Shown here: one piece after another, positions 55,638-64,000 of the stretch | Layout of the letters: each line of letters opens with the position of its first letter | Numbering within the stretch: the stretch's first letter is position 1 | NCBI GenBank assembly: GCA_013115145.1 | Contig: JAAPAO010000059.1 | Coordinates: forward strand, 1 to 64,000 | Length of the DNA stretch: 64,000 bases | Direction of reading: 5' to 3' | Source: Perkinsus chesapeaki ATCC PRA-425 | Lineage: Eukaryota > Protista > Perkinsozoa | The notes under the pieces: generated by a model | The model's database searches: none | Seen by the model: only the letters and a program-made list of their open reading frames with translations | Told to the model about the DNA's origin: nothing | Translations under genes and position numbers: made by a program

Positions 55638-57355
55638 ATGTCACGCGTCGTCTTGAGGTTATTTCATTTCTCGACGCTATTTATTGGCAGCCAAAGCGCT
55701 ACGTGCTCCGATATGTGTGCCGGTCTCGACAGTTGCATTAACGACACGCAAAATCATGGTTCTTACTGCAAGTACTGGCAAAGCCCACCAGTGTGTTTCG
55801 GGATCTATATGAAAGCCGATGGTTCTCTCTGCTTTCACCCTAATGATCCCAGTTGTGACGATACACTGTTTGACCCTGTATACTGCGAGGAGAGCAGTAC
55901 AACATATGCTCCTATGGCTGGGGCAGATAGTGACGAGCTAACCGAGCTACCTGATGAGGGCGATAACGATTACTGGTCGACAGGAACAGCTCCGATGGAT
56001 GCAAATACGTCTGAGCCTACCAATGAGACATCTGCGGAAGTTCAGATCTATACTACGACGGAGTCGCCGGTTGGAACTACTCCTGGACCTTCGATTAAGA
56101 CAACTGCTACTGAGCCTCCTTTTGACACCACGGCTACTGGTTCTTTGGTCGACACCACGGTTGAACCTCTGGTTGAGACTACTGAACCTCCGGTTGACAC
56201 TTTTGTTGAGCCCCCAGCTGAGACTACTGCTGAGCCCCCGGTTGAGACCACTGTTGAACCTCCAGTTGAGACCACTGCTGAGCCCCCGGTTGAGACCACT
56301 GCTGAGCCTTCGGTTGAGACTACTGCTACTGAGCCTTCGGTTGAGACCACTGTTGAACCTCCGGTTGAGACTACTGATCCTCCAGCTGAGACTACTGCCG
56401 AGCCTTCGGTTGAAACTACTGTGCCTTCAGCTGAGACTACTGTCGAGCCTCCGGTTGAGACTACTGAGCCTCCAGCTGAGACAACTGCCGAGCCTCCGGT
56501 TGAAACTACTGCCGAGCCTCCAGCTGAGACTACTGCCGAGCCTTCGGTTGAAACTACTGTGCCTCCAGCTGAGACTACTGTCGAGCCCCCGGTTGAGACT
56601 ACTGATCCTCCGGCTGAGACTACTGCCGAGCCTCCGGTTGAGACTACCGCCGAGCCCCCAGTTGAAACTATTGTGCCTCCAGCTGAGACTACTGCCGAGC
56701 CTCCAGTTGAAACTATTGTGCCTCCAGCTGAGACTACTGCCGAGCCTCCGGTGGAGACCACTGTTGAACCTCCGGTTGAGACTACTGATCCTCCAGCTGA
56801 GACTACTGCCGAGTCTTCGGTTGAAACTACTGCCGAGCCTCCAGCTGAGACTACTGCCGAGTCTTCGGTTGAAACTACTGCCGAGCCTCCAGCTGAGACT
56901 ACTGCCGAGCCTCCGGTTGAGACTACTGAGCCTCCAGCTGAGACTACTGCCGAGCCTCCGGTTGAAACTACTGTGCCTCCAGCTGAGACTACTGCCGAGC
57001 CTTCNNNNNNNNNNNNNNNNNNNNNNNNNNNNNNNNNNNNNNNNNNNNNNNNNNNNNNNNNNNNNNNNNNNNNNNNNNNNNNNNNNNNNNNNNNNNNNNN
57101 CGGCCTCCAGCTGAGACTACTGCCGAGCCTCCGGTTGAAACTACTGTGCCTCCAGCTGAGACTACTGCCGAGCCTTCGGTTGAAACTACTGCTGAGCCTT
57201 CCGTCGATACATCAGGTGAACTTTCCATCGAAACTACGGTTGCTTCTAAGGTTGAAACAACCGAACCCTCTAAATCTACAATTGAGACGTTGCACCCTTC
57301 AGTTGATACAATAGTCTTACGTCCAGCTACCTCTACTATGCGAATTGTTTCCTAA
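55638..57355 (+). CDS. Secreted mucin-like protein: Cys-rich domain plus ETTxEPP repeats, copy 2 (spans a gap)
   Basis: MSRVVLRLFHFSTLFIG, the same domain (HGSYCKYWQSPPVCFGIY...CFHPNDPSCDD), and mixed 7/8-aa repeats. Confidence 0.85.
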
Positions 57356-57808
57356 CCATCATCACTAACGTATTAGTTTTTTCGACTCCTTCGACGTATA
57401 TAAGTATGAAGTTCGTGAACCTCAGGTGTGGTTCAATTCTATTCAATCGTACCGTCTGGCGCTTTGCTACTGAATATCCATTAGTTGTTGCGTTTAGTGT
57501 ACGCATGAACCAGATGTAATTAGCCGCTAGTCGTTTACGCACCGCAACATTCCTACATCACTCCAGCCAATAAACTCAGAGAGGCACGGCTAGGCTGGAA
57601 TGTCCTTTAAGCACCACTCTCAACAACTACTCTCGTGTCTTCCATTTTGAGCATAATACGCACTGTAGCGGTTGGACGGTCCAGCTCGTTCTCTAGGAGG
57701 AAGTATCGCCCGTGGAACGGTGGGGATAGTTAACGACTGGGGATACGAGAACTCAAGAGCAGCATGTTATTGGGTATCTTAGTCGAAACAATCTTAACAA
57801 AGCCTGAT

Positions 57809-58885
57809 CTAGTGCGGCTGAGGGGCTACAAGGCTCTGGTTGAACCACTTCTTGCCATACTGTACGATGGTAGATATCACGGGAAGAGAAGTTACTCTCC
57901 TGAAAGATATGCTCTGTCTCGAGCCTTGCCATGGTTGATTCAATCTTACTGTGTCTTCGAGTCCAATATGCCCCATGCTTCGTGATGATGGGCTGAGGAC
58001 CGTGGAGCTTGATACCTAAGTGGGGCCGCGGGGTTGGGGCACGACAGGGTTTCAGCGCGATGACTTGCCTTATCCGAAGAAGGCTCCAATATAGGAGGCA
58101 TGCCATGATTTCTCGGTAAGGCGTGAACAAGTTTATGATGTACTGGAAACCAAGCCCTGAAAGCACCATGCTTGAGAGGGCAGCGAGGAGAACTCTTACC
58201 AATTTCACATATGGTAGAAACACGCATGATCTCGGTCTCCCTCGACTTGAGCTTCAACCAGAACGGCTGGATCTTCATCCATACCGTGACGCCTGGGAAA
58301 AGCCTGGTGATCGCAAGGGAGGCGGCAACTTACCGGTGAGATGGGAGTTGGCAAAAGTACCGCAATACCAGAGAGAGCGCCGTATGATAACAAAGAGGCC
58401 GAAGAAGTTGGGAACGAAGGAGCCGGTTGTTAGGAGCACTAAAACACTTTTAGTATAAGCTAACATATCTTGCGGGATGACAACTATTACAGCTCATGAA
58501 TAGGAATGGGAAATCGGCGCCCAAAGTGACACGGCTCAGCCACAACTGGAAGGCCTGCATGCCGCTACGTATCTGAGGTCGACAGCTCCATAATAAAGTT
58601 TACGAGAGAGCGGTAGCTTACCGGTGGGAGACCATAGTTGGTCCAGATAGTATAGACGCAGACGAAAGCGCTTGATAGGAAGGTCATCCGGTAGAAAACC
58701 ACCGACGGTATCTTGGCTACATAAGCCTATGGGATAACATAGGTCAATAAGGCGGCGGGCAATATTACCACTAACGATATTATATAGAGTATAGCATTAG
58801 CAAGGACGAGCATGTGCAGTGAGAAGGCTACAGCGGCTGGGCTGGCTGCAGTAGCTTGGCCTGCTGCCGCTCCTGAGTTAGTCAT
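57809..58885 (-). CDS. TMEM33/Pom33-family ER/nuclear-envelope membrane protein, multi-exon; start uncertain
   Basis: Spliced reading YRMTFLSSAFVCVYTI, LWLSRVTLGADFPFLFMS, RSLWYCGTF, EIMRVSTICEIG, IMACLLYWSLLRIR and HEAWGILDSK follows the TMEM33 pattern. Confidence 0.65.
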
Positions 58886-59427
58886 TCCAAATGCCTACTG
58901 CTCCCACAGTACTACTACCTTGTGGCTGCTTCTTAAATCGCATATAAACTATATACCCAACAAGAGGGATGATCCACCACGGTATAGGCATCATAATGTA
59001 ACAAGTAAAGTCCTAACAGATCATCACCATACTTCCACTCACGCGAGAGTAAGGTCCGTCCCTCGCCAAAAAGGGCTATAGCGCGCGCCCGGGCGAGTCC
59101 GGCCTCAAAAAAAATGTACAGCGTTGCGTGTTAGAGACGTTGTTGGTATGAAGAGGTTTTTAGAGGCTGTAGATTAAGTTAGCAACTTAGTGGTTATATT
59201 AGAGAGATGAACCGGAGGGGTAGGGAGCCACTTAGCTTTTTCACGTCACGGGATGCCGGGGCTAGAAATTGTAATAATGTCTCTTAGAGTGAAAGGAAGC
59301 TTGTTATGTCAGGGGGTCGCTTAGGACCCCTCGGAAAGTCTTACTATCATTTTCAGCTCAAAAAATAACAAAGTTGTAGATTTGCTGTTCCCTATTGAAA
59401 TTTCTGTGTAGCCATCAGAGAGTGGCA

Positions 59428-60233
59428 TGATGCTAGATAAGCAGGATGATGCCTCGAGGGCCGCCGAAGTGGAGAGGAATTTCAATGCCTATTTGAGGAC
59501 CTCAATATTCGGCCGACACAAAAGTGGTTCTAGGACTCAGCTGTGAGGCGTTCATACCGACTTTTCCTCAGGTTCCACCCGAATGCGGCAGTCTCAGATA
59601 GAGAATCGACCAAGTCCGCCCAAGAGGGACGCCTGCAGCCATTCCCTTACCACTGTGTCGGCCCCTTGTACGCGGTTTACTGGACTCCTTGTTGAGGAGG
59701 ATACATCGTTCGCCGGCTTACCATTGAAGGCCAGGGTCGAGCGTCTGGCTGAATCATTGGGACATTTGAAACAAGCGCATAATGCAATGCAGAACCAGGT
59801 AATGTCGTTGGTGAAGGACGGGGCTTCCATAGCTCTCTGGCAATTACACTTGTCAGTCGATGCTCTCCGGGTGGTCAAGGCCCATGCCAGGTTCAGCAGA
59901 GTCTCGATAGGCTGAGGAGCGAGATGACGGACTCCGCCAACGACCTAGCCGAAGTAATGGAACGTGCATCAGGGCAGCTGCGGCAAAATGAGAGGTCGGC
60001 TGGCTCGATAATGGTGGTATGTGGCTTATGGCGCTTGTAGGGAGGCGATGGAGACTAAGTCTGTTTTGGAGGGGCATATAAGTAAGATGGAGATGGCACT
60101 GGCTCAACTTGGACGGTATGTGGAGGAGATCGCTGGAAGGCAAGAGGAAGTTGAGGCTACTGTGAGGGAATTGTCGGTATGGGTGCTTTAGTGGCCATGT
60201 TAGATACGGCAAGTTGAGCGAGAAGTTTACGGA
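59428..60233 (+). CDS. Hypothetical coiled-coil protein, multi-exon
   Basis: MLDKQDDASRAAEVERNFNAYL, ARVERLAESLGHLKQAHNAMQNQ|VQQSLDRLRSEM and ...IRQVEREVYG*. Confidence 0.5.
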
Positions 60234-60256
60234 TAGACCTACTTGTTTACTTTGAC

Positions 60257-63200
60257 ATGCACCATTATGATGATGCCTATGGGCGATTTACGAACGACTT
60301 GGTCAGCACTTGTGGTGTTATTAAGGCCCATTTTTATTGGATATTGTTGTTCAGCTCTTTTGTTCCTTCTGGTACCAATATCAGTTATATATGTCACTAC
60401 CATCACTGGCAGTATCCTATTCCCAGGAGAACTGGGCAGTCATGCTCGATGATGCCGACAGATACGCTGTCACGGTCATGTTCATGGTATTACTTGGCAA
60501 CATCGCCAAACTTATCAATTCGCCCTTACTCAGATTACTTTGGCGATATTTCTATTTATAATAGATGAGTTTCGCGGCACTCGCCCGAAGGCCTCCACAG
60601 CATTCATGCCGGTTTTCTATCCAGATGAGAGCATTCCATGGTAAGGGGCGTCTGATGGGGGGCATCGGGTCTGAGGGGCTGGATGCTCAGGGCCAAGCTC
60701 AACGACTACGAGTACTTCTCTGGCCTTTTCGGGCTCGGAATTCGGAAGTGGGCCATCTGGAAGTGGGCAACCGGAGCGATACGTCGCCGTCATGCTAAGT
60801 CCCACAAGAGTAGTAGCGGCGGGCAGCCAGTACGCTTGGCTTATTATTGAGACTATGCTTAGAGTCGACTGAGGAAGGGGAGGAGGTATCCTATCGTGAC
60901 ATGGACCTGCCTTGGGTCACGGTCGTTAATGCGTATATCGGATATTTGGTCCTGTTCTTGAAGGGCATCTTGAGGGAGTGCTTATGGACAGTGACCTTTA
61001 ATAAGAGGAAGAATGACAGTGAGAACTGGTGCCCGCAGTGGTGGAAGGAGTTCTATACTCAACACATGTAACATCATCTACGGTGATATTTCCTATTGGC
61101 AATGCTTAGGTACAGAAGGATCGAAGACTGTTGGAACAGGCCAATATGTTCGGCACCTGGGAGCACGATCGATGTAGCCGTTGCGGTCCTTCGTAGCACG
61201 AGTCAGCGCATGTGGCAGGTGTTGGTCCGTTCTCGTCCAAATGACATCCTCAAAAGGTTTGGGAAATTCCAGCCCACTGGTGAAGTTCAGAGAGGCTGCA
61301 TTAATCTGGCCTCATATAACTACCTGGGCTTCGGTGGTACCGACAAATACTGTAATAAAGATTGTTGAGCTTTGGACGTATCTTGAGGTCAACTTAAGGT
61401 ACTCCGTTGGCCATTAAGGCTCTGGACGAGTACGGCTTGGCTGTATGTGCCTCAAGGCCGGAGTATGGCGGTAAGTCCGGGCTGATTGGGGTGGGCTTGG
61501 TGGAATTGGTTTTGTTAGGAACTAATAGACTGCATAACGAGTTTGAGTCAAAGGTCGCGGCATTTTTGGGAAAGGAAGATGCCCTAGTTATGGGCATGGG
61601 TTTCGCCACTAACAGTAATGATAAGGGGGAGACGTGTGCACCGAGATCGCCATTAGGAGTATCTTAGGTTGATCCTAGGTCATCACATTCAGGTACTTTC
61701 CTTGGAGCCTTGGCTATGACTGAAGGTGGCTCTACTGCTAAGAAAGTACTACACTGCCTTTCACGGATGCTGTCGGGCACTCAGCTTTGAGTGGTATTTC
61801 AGACTCTTTTCGTTTCGGATCAACTGAACCACAAGTCAATCGTTGAGGGCGTTAAACAGAGTAGCGCCAAGGTCATCGGATTTAAGCATAATAATATGCA
61901 TGACCTTGAGAAAATTTTGGATAGAGAGACCCGTACTATGTGGTGGCAGCGTAGGTTCGTGGCATTGGCCGGGCAGGTTCGGGCAAATGGGCTAAGATCG
62001 TTATTATTGTTGAGGGTATTTATTCGATGGAGGGAGAGTTCTGCCGCTTGAGAGAGACTGTAAGGAAGAAGCAGCAGCAGCTACTGCTTGAATTTGGTTG
62101 TTATAATGCTGGCTGCTGTGGTAATCAGGTCTCCTTGAAAAACAAGTATAACTGTTACTTATGGCTTGATGAGGCTCACTCCATCGGAGCGGTCGGGCCT
62201 ACTGGACGTGGTATTACTGAACTTTTTGGCGTTGGTAGGCGCAGCGAAGCACTGGAGGTCCTCGACGGTTTAATTGGTTTATTAGATACTTCGGAGGTTG
62301 ATATTATGATGGGCACTTTTACTAAGTCGTTCGGTTCTAATGGCGGTTACATTGCCAGCACCAACGAGTGCATTCAGGTGCTGTCTGTTTGGGGAGGTTT
62401 ATCCGCCTATTCGGGAAGCTAGTCTTTCTCAGCACCTTCGCCGTTGTTCCTTGGGCTGGCTACATGGTGCTGCGATGCCGCCTATGGTAACAGCTCAGGC
62501 AATGGCCGCTCTAGATTTACTGTCTACTGAAAGGGGCAAGGCTAAGGTAGTGGCAGCTGGCTAGGGGGGGGAGGGAGACAGCTTTTGTGCAACAGTTACG
62601 TGCTGTACGAGAAAATGCCAACTACCTCCGTGAGGGTCTAATGAAGCTCAATTTACGTGTTATCGGCGATATCGATTCCCCTGTTATCTGCGTTATGCTG
62701 GTAATAGCTTGGATGGGTTACCTTCGTCTTTGTTATTATCACTGATAGGTTCATCCCGAGAAGATTGCTCGCTTCTCTAGGGAATGCCTGAAGAGGAACA
62801 TTGCGGCTGTTGTGGTAGGTCCATCATCCTGGCTTGGGCAGTGGGGAGCTTGCTCTGTGCCAGGTGGGGTACCCGGCAACACCAGTGATTCTGTCTCGAG
62901 CCAGATTTTGTGTGAGCGCCAGTCACACTAAGGAGCAGTTGGATGAGACACTCCGTGTCGTTAAAGAGGTCTCCCATATCGTCGGTAATTAGACCACTGG
63001 GACCCGGTCGTGTCGCTCGGTAGTTTCGGTCGCACTCGGGAAATTTTCTTTTGCAAATCGCCGCGGGGAGTGCGTTGGTTATCAACGCACTCATATCACT
63101 CATATCACGATATCACGCATATCGGGCAGTACTATGATGCTTCCTCGTGACTTCTCCCGTGTAGGAGTGCGAGTGACGTAAAAGGGTATATTGATTAACA

Positions 63201-64000
63201 TGAATTTTACCGTACTTGTATATCGTATACAGATATAGTAATAGAATGGAAATATTTCTGGCAGAAGGGTGCATGGTTACACGGTGTCAGGTATTGAGTA
63301 CGGTAACAACACCGATGAGAATGCAGCCAAGGCATATAGGAAGTATCTTGCCGAAGCTCCTATTGCGACTGAGCCCCTAGATGGCCTTGAAGCATACTGG
63401 AATCCTGAGCCATTGGTGCCTGCTACACTAGAGGAGGACAGGGAGAATCTGTCGAGCAAAAGTAGGATACGGGAGAGGTTGGTTGGAGGTCCATGTGGAG
63501 CGGTAGGCACTTCTGCTACCAACTCTCCCCGAGATAGCGGCGCCAGTGAGACCGAGGATGAGCAGCAGGCCAAGGGCTTGCTTGATTTCGCCACCATCGA
63601 TCCTCTGGCATTGCAGCACAAGCCAGATGAGAGGTTGATGAAGGTTGCTAGGGACGTCGTAAGGGAGAAGGGTGTGGGTGCATGTGGCCCTCGAGGCTTC
63701 TATGGTAGCACTGTTCCCTTGGGTTTGGGACCGGAATGAGTGGCATCAGGTACGACGGTGGAGCACTTGGATCTCGAAAAGGCTATCACTGAGTTCCTGG
63801 GCACCGAGGCTTCGATTGTCTACAGCCATCACACTGTGTCCGATTCTAGTGTGGTAAGTGGTGGTGGAGGTGTTGCCGTCTCCAGGCGGATGATTGGATC
63901 CATCAGATCCAAGCATTCATCACCAAGAATGATTTTGTCATCGTCCATAAGGACGCGAATCCACACATGTGCATCGGCCTTAACTTGTCCCGCGCTAAGA
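60257..64000 (+). CDS. Serine palmitoyltransferase: LCB2 moiety spliced to an LCB1 moiety (predicted single chain); runs off the window; start uncertain
   Basis: LCB2 motifs: [46 protein letters not shown], and GTFTKSFG with the PLP Lys at 62324-62326. LCB1 motifs: [20 protein letters not shown] and [22 protein letters not shown] phase-1 intron at 62985-63290 joins the two. Confidence 0.8.

Follow-up and report, generated by a model that had tools for sequence, protein, structure and literature searches.

Introduction

Serine palmitoyltransferase (SPT) commits its substrates to sphingolipid synthesis. It is normally a heterodimer of two subunits, LCB1 and LCB2, encoded by two genes and assisted by small regulatory partners. 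Perkinsus, the organism considered here, is a parasite of oysters and clams. An SPT of another kind has been described in viruses: that of the coccolithoviruses is presented as a natural chimera of both subunits (PMC6148460), and that of EhV-86 was expressed and assayed as a single-chain enzyme (Han et al. 2006, J Biol Chem 281:39935, as cited in PMC5371807). We analyzed a stretch of 64,000 nucleotides (nt) of Perkinsus chesapeaki ATCC PRA-425 (contig JAAPAO010000059.1, positions 1 to 64,000 of the forward strand), referred to as the window. Its 3’ end carries an SPT locus, gene A, that is very probably a spliced single-chain SPT gene, LCB2 preceding LCB1, and one member of a tandem pair in P. 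chesapeaki.

The SPT of EhV-86 and the one predicted for Perkinsus both have LCB2 then LCB1 in one chain, and both are devoid of the N-terminal membrane helix of LCB1. Disparities nevertheless appear between them. The Perkinsus protein is about 170 amino acids (aa) longer, and its N-terminal extension contributes one more hydrophobic helix. Its linker is also longer, with a conserved helix, a WxPEPLVP motif and a Ser/acid-rich loop, whereas the viral linker is short and lacks WxPEPLVP. Lastly the Perkinsus gene, unlike the viral one, has 22 introns and belongs to a tandem pair.

The canonical subunits (human SPTLC1/SPTLC2, Arabidopsis LCB1/LCB2a and yeast Lcb1/Lcb2; PDB 7K0N, 7YJK and 8C82) match both halves of the Perkinsus protein in folds and motifs, including the lysine binding pyridoxal phosphate (PLP), found in the LCB2 half only. 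The canonical heterodimer however comes from two genes, while the predicted Perkinsus protein is one chain in which the first LCB1 transmembrane helix is absent.

Single-chain SPTs have also been made artificially. Han et al. are said to have engineered, in 2006, single-chain chimeras of the yeast and mammalian enzymes, and LCB2-ssSPT-LCB1 constructs, including the small subunit (ssSPT), were made later. The engineered chimeras indicate that the order LCB2-LCB1 can be active and so make the mechanism considered for Perkinsus plausible, but they are artificial; in contrast to the LCB2-ssSPT-LCB1 constructs, no small-subunit-like segment is detected by Pfam in the Perkinsus protein.

Among alveolates, TgSPT1 of Toxoplasma is a bacterial-type SPT (PMC5519370). 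It catalyses the same reaction in a related organism but is a homodimeric, bacterial-like, single-domain enzyme, whereas the Perkinsus protein fuses a eukaryotic LCB2 with a eukaryotic LCB1. A Perkinsus marinus SPT figures in the list of database sequences that match the viral gene (PMC5371807), and in the searchable literature that article is the only one in which Perkinsus and SPT are named together, merely as a BLAST match. The broad spread of fused forms is likewise scarcely discussed in this literature, the kind itself being known from EhV. A natural single chain sets a 1:1 stoichiometry and dispenses with the LCB1 membrane helix, and thus offers a useful natural experiment on the anchoring and regulation of the complex. 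It also shows which enzyme would be the target of SPT inhibitors in Perkinsus.

Results

The junction between the LCB2 and LCB1 halves

Positions 60000-64000 were read and translated in the three forward frames. The LCB2 frame reads GTC (62981-83), GGT (62984-86) and AAT, then meets the stop codon TAG (62990-92). These last codons overlap a GTAATT donor whose GT is at 62985-86, so that the G at 62984 is left as the first base of a split Gly codon (phase 1); the TAG, 5 nt into the intron, would terminate an unspliced LCB2. The acceptor AG is at 63289-90, and the exon that starts at 63291 reads GT ATT GAG TAC GGT AAC AAC. Joining 62984 to 63291 restores GGT (Gly), and the resulting frame, ..IVG/IEYGNN.., runs in phase into LCB1. 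Upstream of the acceptor the LCB1 frame is blocked by TAG TAA TAG (63236-63244), no in-frame ATG is present from 63245 to 63290, and the first in-frame Met is downstream of the conserved motif WNPEPLVP. A hydrophobic segment was looked for in the 120 residues that follow the junction (Kyte-Doolittle, 19-residue window) and none was found, the maximum being 0.13, which is what a fused form would lead one to expect.

An earlier note, made from the letters of the window, had proposed that LCB2 ends at the GTAATT donor and continues in phase from a TCAG acceptor at 63290, that the LCB1 frame has no ATG before its upstream stops, and that it lacks the usual N-terminal transmembrane helix. Every coordinate was confirmed by reading and translating the sequence, and the two other statements hold as well. 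The splice sites of the junction also match the habit of the gene: GTAATT is close to the GTAATA and GTAATG donors used elsewhere, and TCAG acceptors are recurrent.

We considered an RNA gene as a possible content of the long junction intron and rejected it: the Rfam scan of its 306 nt matched no family, its folding compared to shuffles is not unusual (z = -0.15), and no repeat copy of it was found elsewhere in the window or in the fetched loci. Run X4, from DNA sampled independently, contains a second haplotype; its contig departs from the window at 62991 and returns at 63286, with several substitutions in the exons flanking the intron. The content of the junction intron thus differs between haplotypes, and its 306-nt form may be allele-specific.

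Conservation of the junction intron in Perkinsus

Seven Perkinsus loci were compared: the tandem paralogues A and B, present in P. chesapeaki, P. marinus and P. olseni alike, and one Logan contig (L001). All have a phase-1 GT..AG intron at exactly the same codon, and splicing preserves the frame in 7/7. The lengths of this intron vary (Table 1), and three of them (46, 55 and 217 nt) cannot be divided by 3. Six loci, all but P. chesapeaki B, were translated without splicing: four of them (the window, both P. olseni copies and P. marinus B) run into a stop, while the frame remains open in L001 and P. marinus A. As the downstream frame is conserved in all loci despite these stops and lengths, splicing appears to be required.

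No in-frame ATG precedes or interrupts the first 57 codons of the junction exon. Compared between species with the orthologues, they have a proportion of nonsynonymous differences (pN) of 0.18-0.21 and a proportion of synonymous differences (pS) of 0.63-0.87, which argues that they are translated in this frame. Judged from these substitutions, the start-less junction exon is under purifying selection, though no species has a start codon for it.

The end of LCB2 itself gives an additional indication. In standalone LCB2 of animals, fungi, green algae and a cryptophyte, the motif [LIV]-[KR]-[YF] directly follows the last helix. In Perkinsus this tail motif is encoded 3’ of the splice, as IEY (63293-63301) in gene A and ICY in paralogue B, and VGIxY is the consensus at the junction among 43 fused proteins. 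The motif is therefore present only if the junction intron is spliced; the unspliced LCB2 ends with ..IVGN and lacks it.

Gene A and its features

The exon model of gene A was guided by the orthologues, and its part past 64000 was read from an identical contig (L006). The gene consists of 23 exons, opens with ATG 60391, closes with a TAA at window-equivalent 64897, where the public gene also stops, and codes for 1,041 aa; its final three exons lie beyond the end of the window. The contig extension called for in the earlier note thus gave an intact LCB1 half. Besides the junction intron, the 21 introns measure 42-78 nt and have GTA/GTG donors, those of the LCB2 half being of the form GTA/GTG..AG. 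The coordinates are collected in Table 1.

Table 1. Features of gene A and of the junction in Perkinsus loci (window positions unless stated otherwise)
Feature	Position	Strand	Description
N-terminal extension and LCB2 half of gene A	60391-62984	+	17 exons
LCB2-half exons 1-6	60391-60486, 60534-60640, 60691-60809, 60863-61067, 61110-61173, 61219-61351	+	
LCB2-half exons 7-12	61399-61470, 61519-61614, 61693-61745, 61803-61932, 61977-62059, 62129-62234	+	
LCB2-half exons 13-17	62286-62377, 62433-62546, 62596-62700, 62749-62814, 62864-62984	+	
N-terminal hydrophobic helix	60463-60566	+	model residues 25-43; interrupted by 47-nt intron 60487-60533
PLP-binding lysine codon AAG	62324-62326	+	GTFTKSFG, model residue K435
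Last LCB2 exon	62864-62984	+	VGYPATPV...EVSHIV and first base of Gly; 90-95% identical to gene A orthologues
Junction intron, P. chesapeaki A	62985-63290	+	306 nt, phase 1, GTAATT..TGTCAG; holds in-frame TAG 62990-62992
Rival start frame in the junction intron	63134-63181	+	ATG ATG; in phase via GT 63159 to 63291 or GT 63178 to 63265
Junction exon	63291-63461	+	LCB2 tail motif (G)IEY, linker with Y..YL.EAPI, LCB1 motif WNPEPLVP
Probable 45-nt linker intron	63462-63506	+	GTAGGA..CGGTAG, in frame; retention would add 15 residues
LCB1 catalytic-fold domain start	63507-64000	+	exons 63507-63704, 63750-63853, 63907-64000 (continues to 64137 outside the window)
Junction intron, P. chesapeaki B	L006 12638-12679		42 nt
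Junction intron, P. marinus A			51 nt
Junction intron, P. marinus B			217 nt
Junction intron, P. olseni A			46 nt
Junction intron, P. olseni B			55 nt
Junction intron, Logan contig L001			54 nt

Two 45-nt GT..AG segments, 61174-61218 and 63462-63506, are in frame, stop-free and coding-like. None of the six aligned Perkinsus fused proteins has the residues they would encode, and for this reason we called them introns; by this comparison they are probably introns whose retention would escape frame checks. Before their removal, the gene A model was 88% identical to its P. marinus (P0009) and P. olseni (P0010) counterparts. Over the LCB2 domain the window model is 94% identical to P0009.

The N-terminal part contains two hydrophobic segments, at residues 25-43 (Kyte-Doolittle 2.29) and 126-144 (1.79), and the predicted structure of P0009 has a helix at 12-46. 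The Pfam search of the N-terminal extension and the linker gave no match, ssSPT-like or otherwise. The N-terminal extension (60391-60862) also carries a conserved segment besides the extra hydrophobic helix.

The start ATG 60391 was adopted from P0009. The public model of the locus, of 1222 aa, begins at 59430, about 960 nt upstream of the ATG used in the P. marinus models, and the segment 59430-60390 is either a part of the SPT gene or a merged neighbour; the product would be longer if the public start is right. The P. olseni model has a coiled-coil-like upstream part with a weak match to window 59685-59801.

Identity of the two halves and predicted structure

The fused orthologue P0002 (XP_002771826.1, P. 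marinus “serine palmitoyltransferase, putative”, 1042 aa) is matched by Pfam PF00155 and carries two aminotransferase class I/II stretches. A HMMER search with the junction exon aligned it at residues 570-692 of P0002 with 64% identity. For the LCB1 half, a PDB sequence search with 63293-63703 returned only LCB1/SPTLC1 chains, barring a chance-level ribosomal match (E = 0.68). The matching region covers the W-x-PEPL-x-P segment and G-V-G-x-CGPRGFY, and the LCB1 homology begins just after the expected site of the first transmembrane helix.

The PLP lysine K435 is invariant in the 43-sequence alignment of fused proteins and present in the window model. At the equivalent site the LCB1 half reads GSLEHAFG, with His and not Lys; this site was read in L006, beyond the window, and the orthologues are alike.

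AlphaFold2 was run on the orthologue P0009 with the 43-sequence alignment and gave a mean pLDDT of 80 and a pTM of 0.84. The linker helix (597-609) and the WxPEPLVP segment that follows are confident, and the loop 636-665 is disordered. With Foldseek this model matches SPTLC2/LCB2 (AtLCB2a) with TMt 0.88-0.90 at 42-45% identity, and SPTLC1 with TMt 0.72. The high pTM obtained for a two-domain chain is consistent with a predicted intramolecular pseudo-heterodimer.

The steps leading to such a product could be as follows. Gene A would be transcribed as one 23-exon pre-mRNA, and excision of 62985-63290 would remove the premature TAG. The splice would link ..EVSHIV-G to an exon that first completes the C-terminal tail of LCB2 (IEY), then encodes a partly helical linker, about 25 residues long, followed by a Ser/acid-rich loop leading to an LCB1 domain without N-terminal membrane helix. 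In the product, of about 1,041 aa from ATG 60391, the LCB2 half would give the PLP lysine K435 and the LCB1 half, with its His, the other half of the interface active site, i.e. an intramolecular pseudo-heterodimer. Anchoring to the membrane would be ensured by the hydrophobic helices of the N-terminal part, whose topology is putative.

Transcripts

Over 60300-64000, the two small runs labelled “RNA?” that were found for P. chesapeaki gave a single contig of 251 nt, at 60690-60977, short of the junction. It is spliced at 60809/60863, which corresponds to a GT..AG joint of the model (intron 60810-60862), and its loose end of 16 nt fits the end of the upstream exon, which implies the 60640/60691 splice (intron 60641-60690). 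This suggests that the 5’ part of gene A is expressed. Metagenome and metatranscriptome contigs were also scanned with a degenerate pattern of the spliced junction, without a match. From the conservation of the intron we nevertheless infer that the junction is spliced in P. chesapeaki in vivo.

Public annotation and the tandem paralogue

Window 57101-64000 is 100% identical to contig JAAPAO010000059.1 of assembly GCA_013115145.1. In the public annotation of this contig, the 1222-aa gene is single and covers both halves (window 59430-64897). Its span and length suggest that it uses the same junction splice. Fused models are thus already public, both here and for sister species (those of P. marinus date from the annotation of ATCC 50983), and our finding mostly confirms the existing annotation.

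A second fused gene, B (P0012, 1039 aa), lies in tandem 3’ of gene A (L006 10001-14515, window-equivalent 65977-70491). It is about 59% identical to gene A and its junction intron is at the same codon. The annotation likewise gives tandem fused pairs for P. marinus (XP_002774667.1, XP_002774668.1) and P. olseni (KAF4669203.1, KAF4669202.1). These four proteins and XP_002771826.1 have an identity to gene A of 81-88% for the A copies and about 59% for the B copies. The annotated genes are similar to gene A in junction sequence, intron position and tandem A-B order. They differ in the size of the junction intron, 306 nt in gene A versus 42-217 nt in the other Perkinsus loci; furthermore, the public P. 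chesapeaki and P. olseni models carry the upstream N-terminal part while the P. marinus models are without it.

A standalone annotated Perkinsus LCB1 was sought with the LCB1 half among candidates of 246-784 aa (8000 scored), and only fragments of fused loci were recovered, which is weak evidence.

Alternative explanations

Several points weigh against gene A being a single-chain gene. Its junction intron is 4-7 times longer than the 21 others, retention of this intron would give an LCB2-only product because of the early stop, and one of its ATGs could open the LCB1 frame through an in-phase splice. No RNA covering 62984/63291 in P. chesapeaki was found among the two “RNA?” runs. Public gene models are predictions, possibly propagated by homology, and not an independent proof, and the activity of the fused protein as an SPT is itself a prediction. 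The stop immediately after the donor, a gap (306 nt) unusually long for gene A, the ATG ATG at 63134 joinable through GT 63159 or GT 63178 and the absence of a spanning RNA read would also suit two separate genes, an LCB2 stopping at ..IVGN* (62990-92) and an LCB1 expressed on its own, either from ATG 63134 or with a spliced leader, which Perkinsus uses, added at 63290. We hold this to be very unlikely. The homologous gap is 42-55 nt in five of the six other loci, which leaves no room for a transcript end with its terminator, nor for a promoter and a start exon. The gap of two loci is open in frame even when unspliced. The internal ATG exon has no counterpart in relatives, as the introns of the gene A orthologues, of 46-54 nt, could not accommodate it. 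A leader at 63290 would leave conserved, selected codons startless, the first in-frame Met being downstream of them. Moreover, LCB2 would be deprived of its conserved tail motif and the separate LCB1 would have no membrane helix.

The fusion could instead be the main product of a gene that makes both forms, the long, stop-containing intron being sometimes retained to yield, as a regulatory device, an LCB2-only protein or a transcript targeted for decay. In the window allele retention does read GN*, the junction intron is long relative to the rest of the gene, and the X4 second haplotype differs across exactly this intron (62991 to 63286), the content of which is thus unconstrained. But the outcome of retention is not conserved, since P. 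marinus A and L001 would merely gain residues in frame whereas the others would meet a frameshift or a stop, and we find this improbable. The six-fold expansion of the intron relative to the gene A orthologues, with a tandem paralogue at hand, might also mean that gene A is a decaying copy in which splicing is hampered, paralogue B or the other haplotype doing the work. This is barely conceivable for a gene in which all 23 exons are open, the splice sites canonical and the catalytic Lys and conserved motifs intact, whose protein is 88-94% identical to orthologues while synonymous sites are saturated, and whose 5’ exons appear spliced in the “RNA?” contig. The conservation of the intron in seven loci, the selection on the junction exon, the LCB2 tail, the intact LCB1 half and the fused orthologues in three Perkinsus species all argue for a single LCB2-LCB1 polypeptide produced by splicing, as the earlier note had predicted.

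Fused SPTs outside Perkinsus

With the whole P. marinus protein as query, fused proteins of about 1000-1660 aa were found in Amoebophrya, Effrenium voratum and Ostreococcus. Fused forms are also present in MMETSP/Trinity assembled transcripts of other protists marked complete (P0041, P0047 and P0056) and in many marine metagenome and Logan contigs, several of which barely exceed the reading frame. Two giant-virus contigs from IMG/VR, probably from coccolithovirus-like viruses, encode an intronless fused SPT of 870-875 aa (L004 2929-5565 and L005 2944-5565), 38% identical to P0009, with a much shorter linker and without WxPEPLVP. The earlier note likewise gave the fused order LCB2-LCB1 as known from coccolithovirus and a few protists. 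A linker motif, Y..WL..AP[LIM], is common to the Perkinsus, Amoebophrya and dinoflagellate (Effrenium) sequences.

A phylogeny of each half had been suggested; the tree built here, by a quick search, covers the LCB2 half. In it the A and B genes of Perkinsus make up a single clade (SH-aLRT 100), and the gene of the window falls within clade A (99). Viral fused forms stand on one side together with the alveolate and unnamed ones (support 85-91). The prasinophyte fused forms group with standalone LCB2, which hints at more than one origin of the fusion; the deep branches being weakly supported, we draw no firm conclusion from them.

A tentative reading, which we think rather doubtful as a whole, is that the fusion is not peculiar to Perkinsus or to viruses but an old trait common to dinozoan alveolates (Perkinsus, Amoebophrya and dinoflagellates), with its own linker helix (Y..WL..AP), whose LCB2 halves cluster with giant-virus SPTs, apart from standalone LCB2. 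The coccolithovirus-type enzyme would then come from a wider exchange between protists and viruses, and the Perkinsus fused gene would have been duplicated in tandem later. On this reading the copies A and B may differ in their preference for acyl-CoA or amino acid, and the extra N-terminal helix may take over the role of a small subunit or of the membrane helix missing from LCB1.

Other feature of the window

A long tandem array occupies 56160-57199, with periods of 21-24 and 45 nt and about 18 copies of the 45-nt unit. Its consensus unit, GTTGAGCCTCCGGTTGAGACTACT.., appears to encode a Pro/Glu/Thr-rich repeat.

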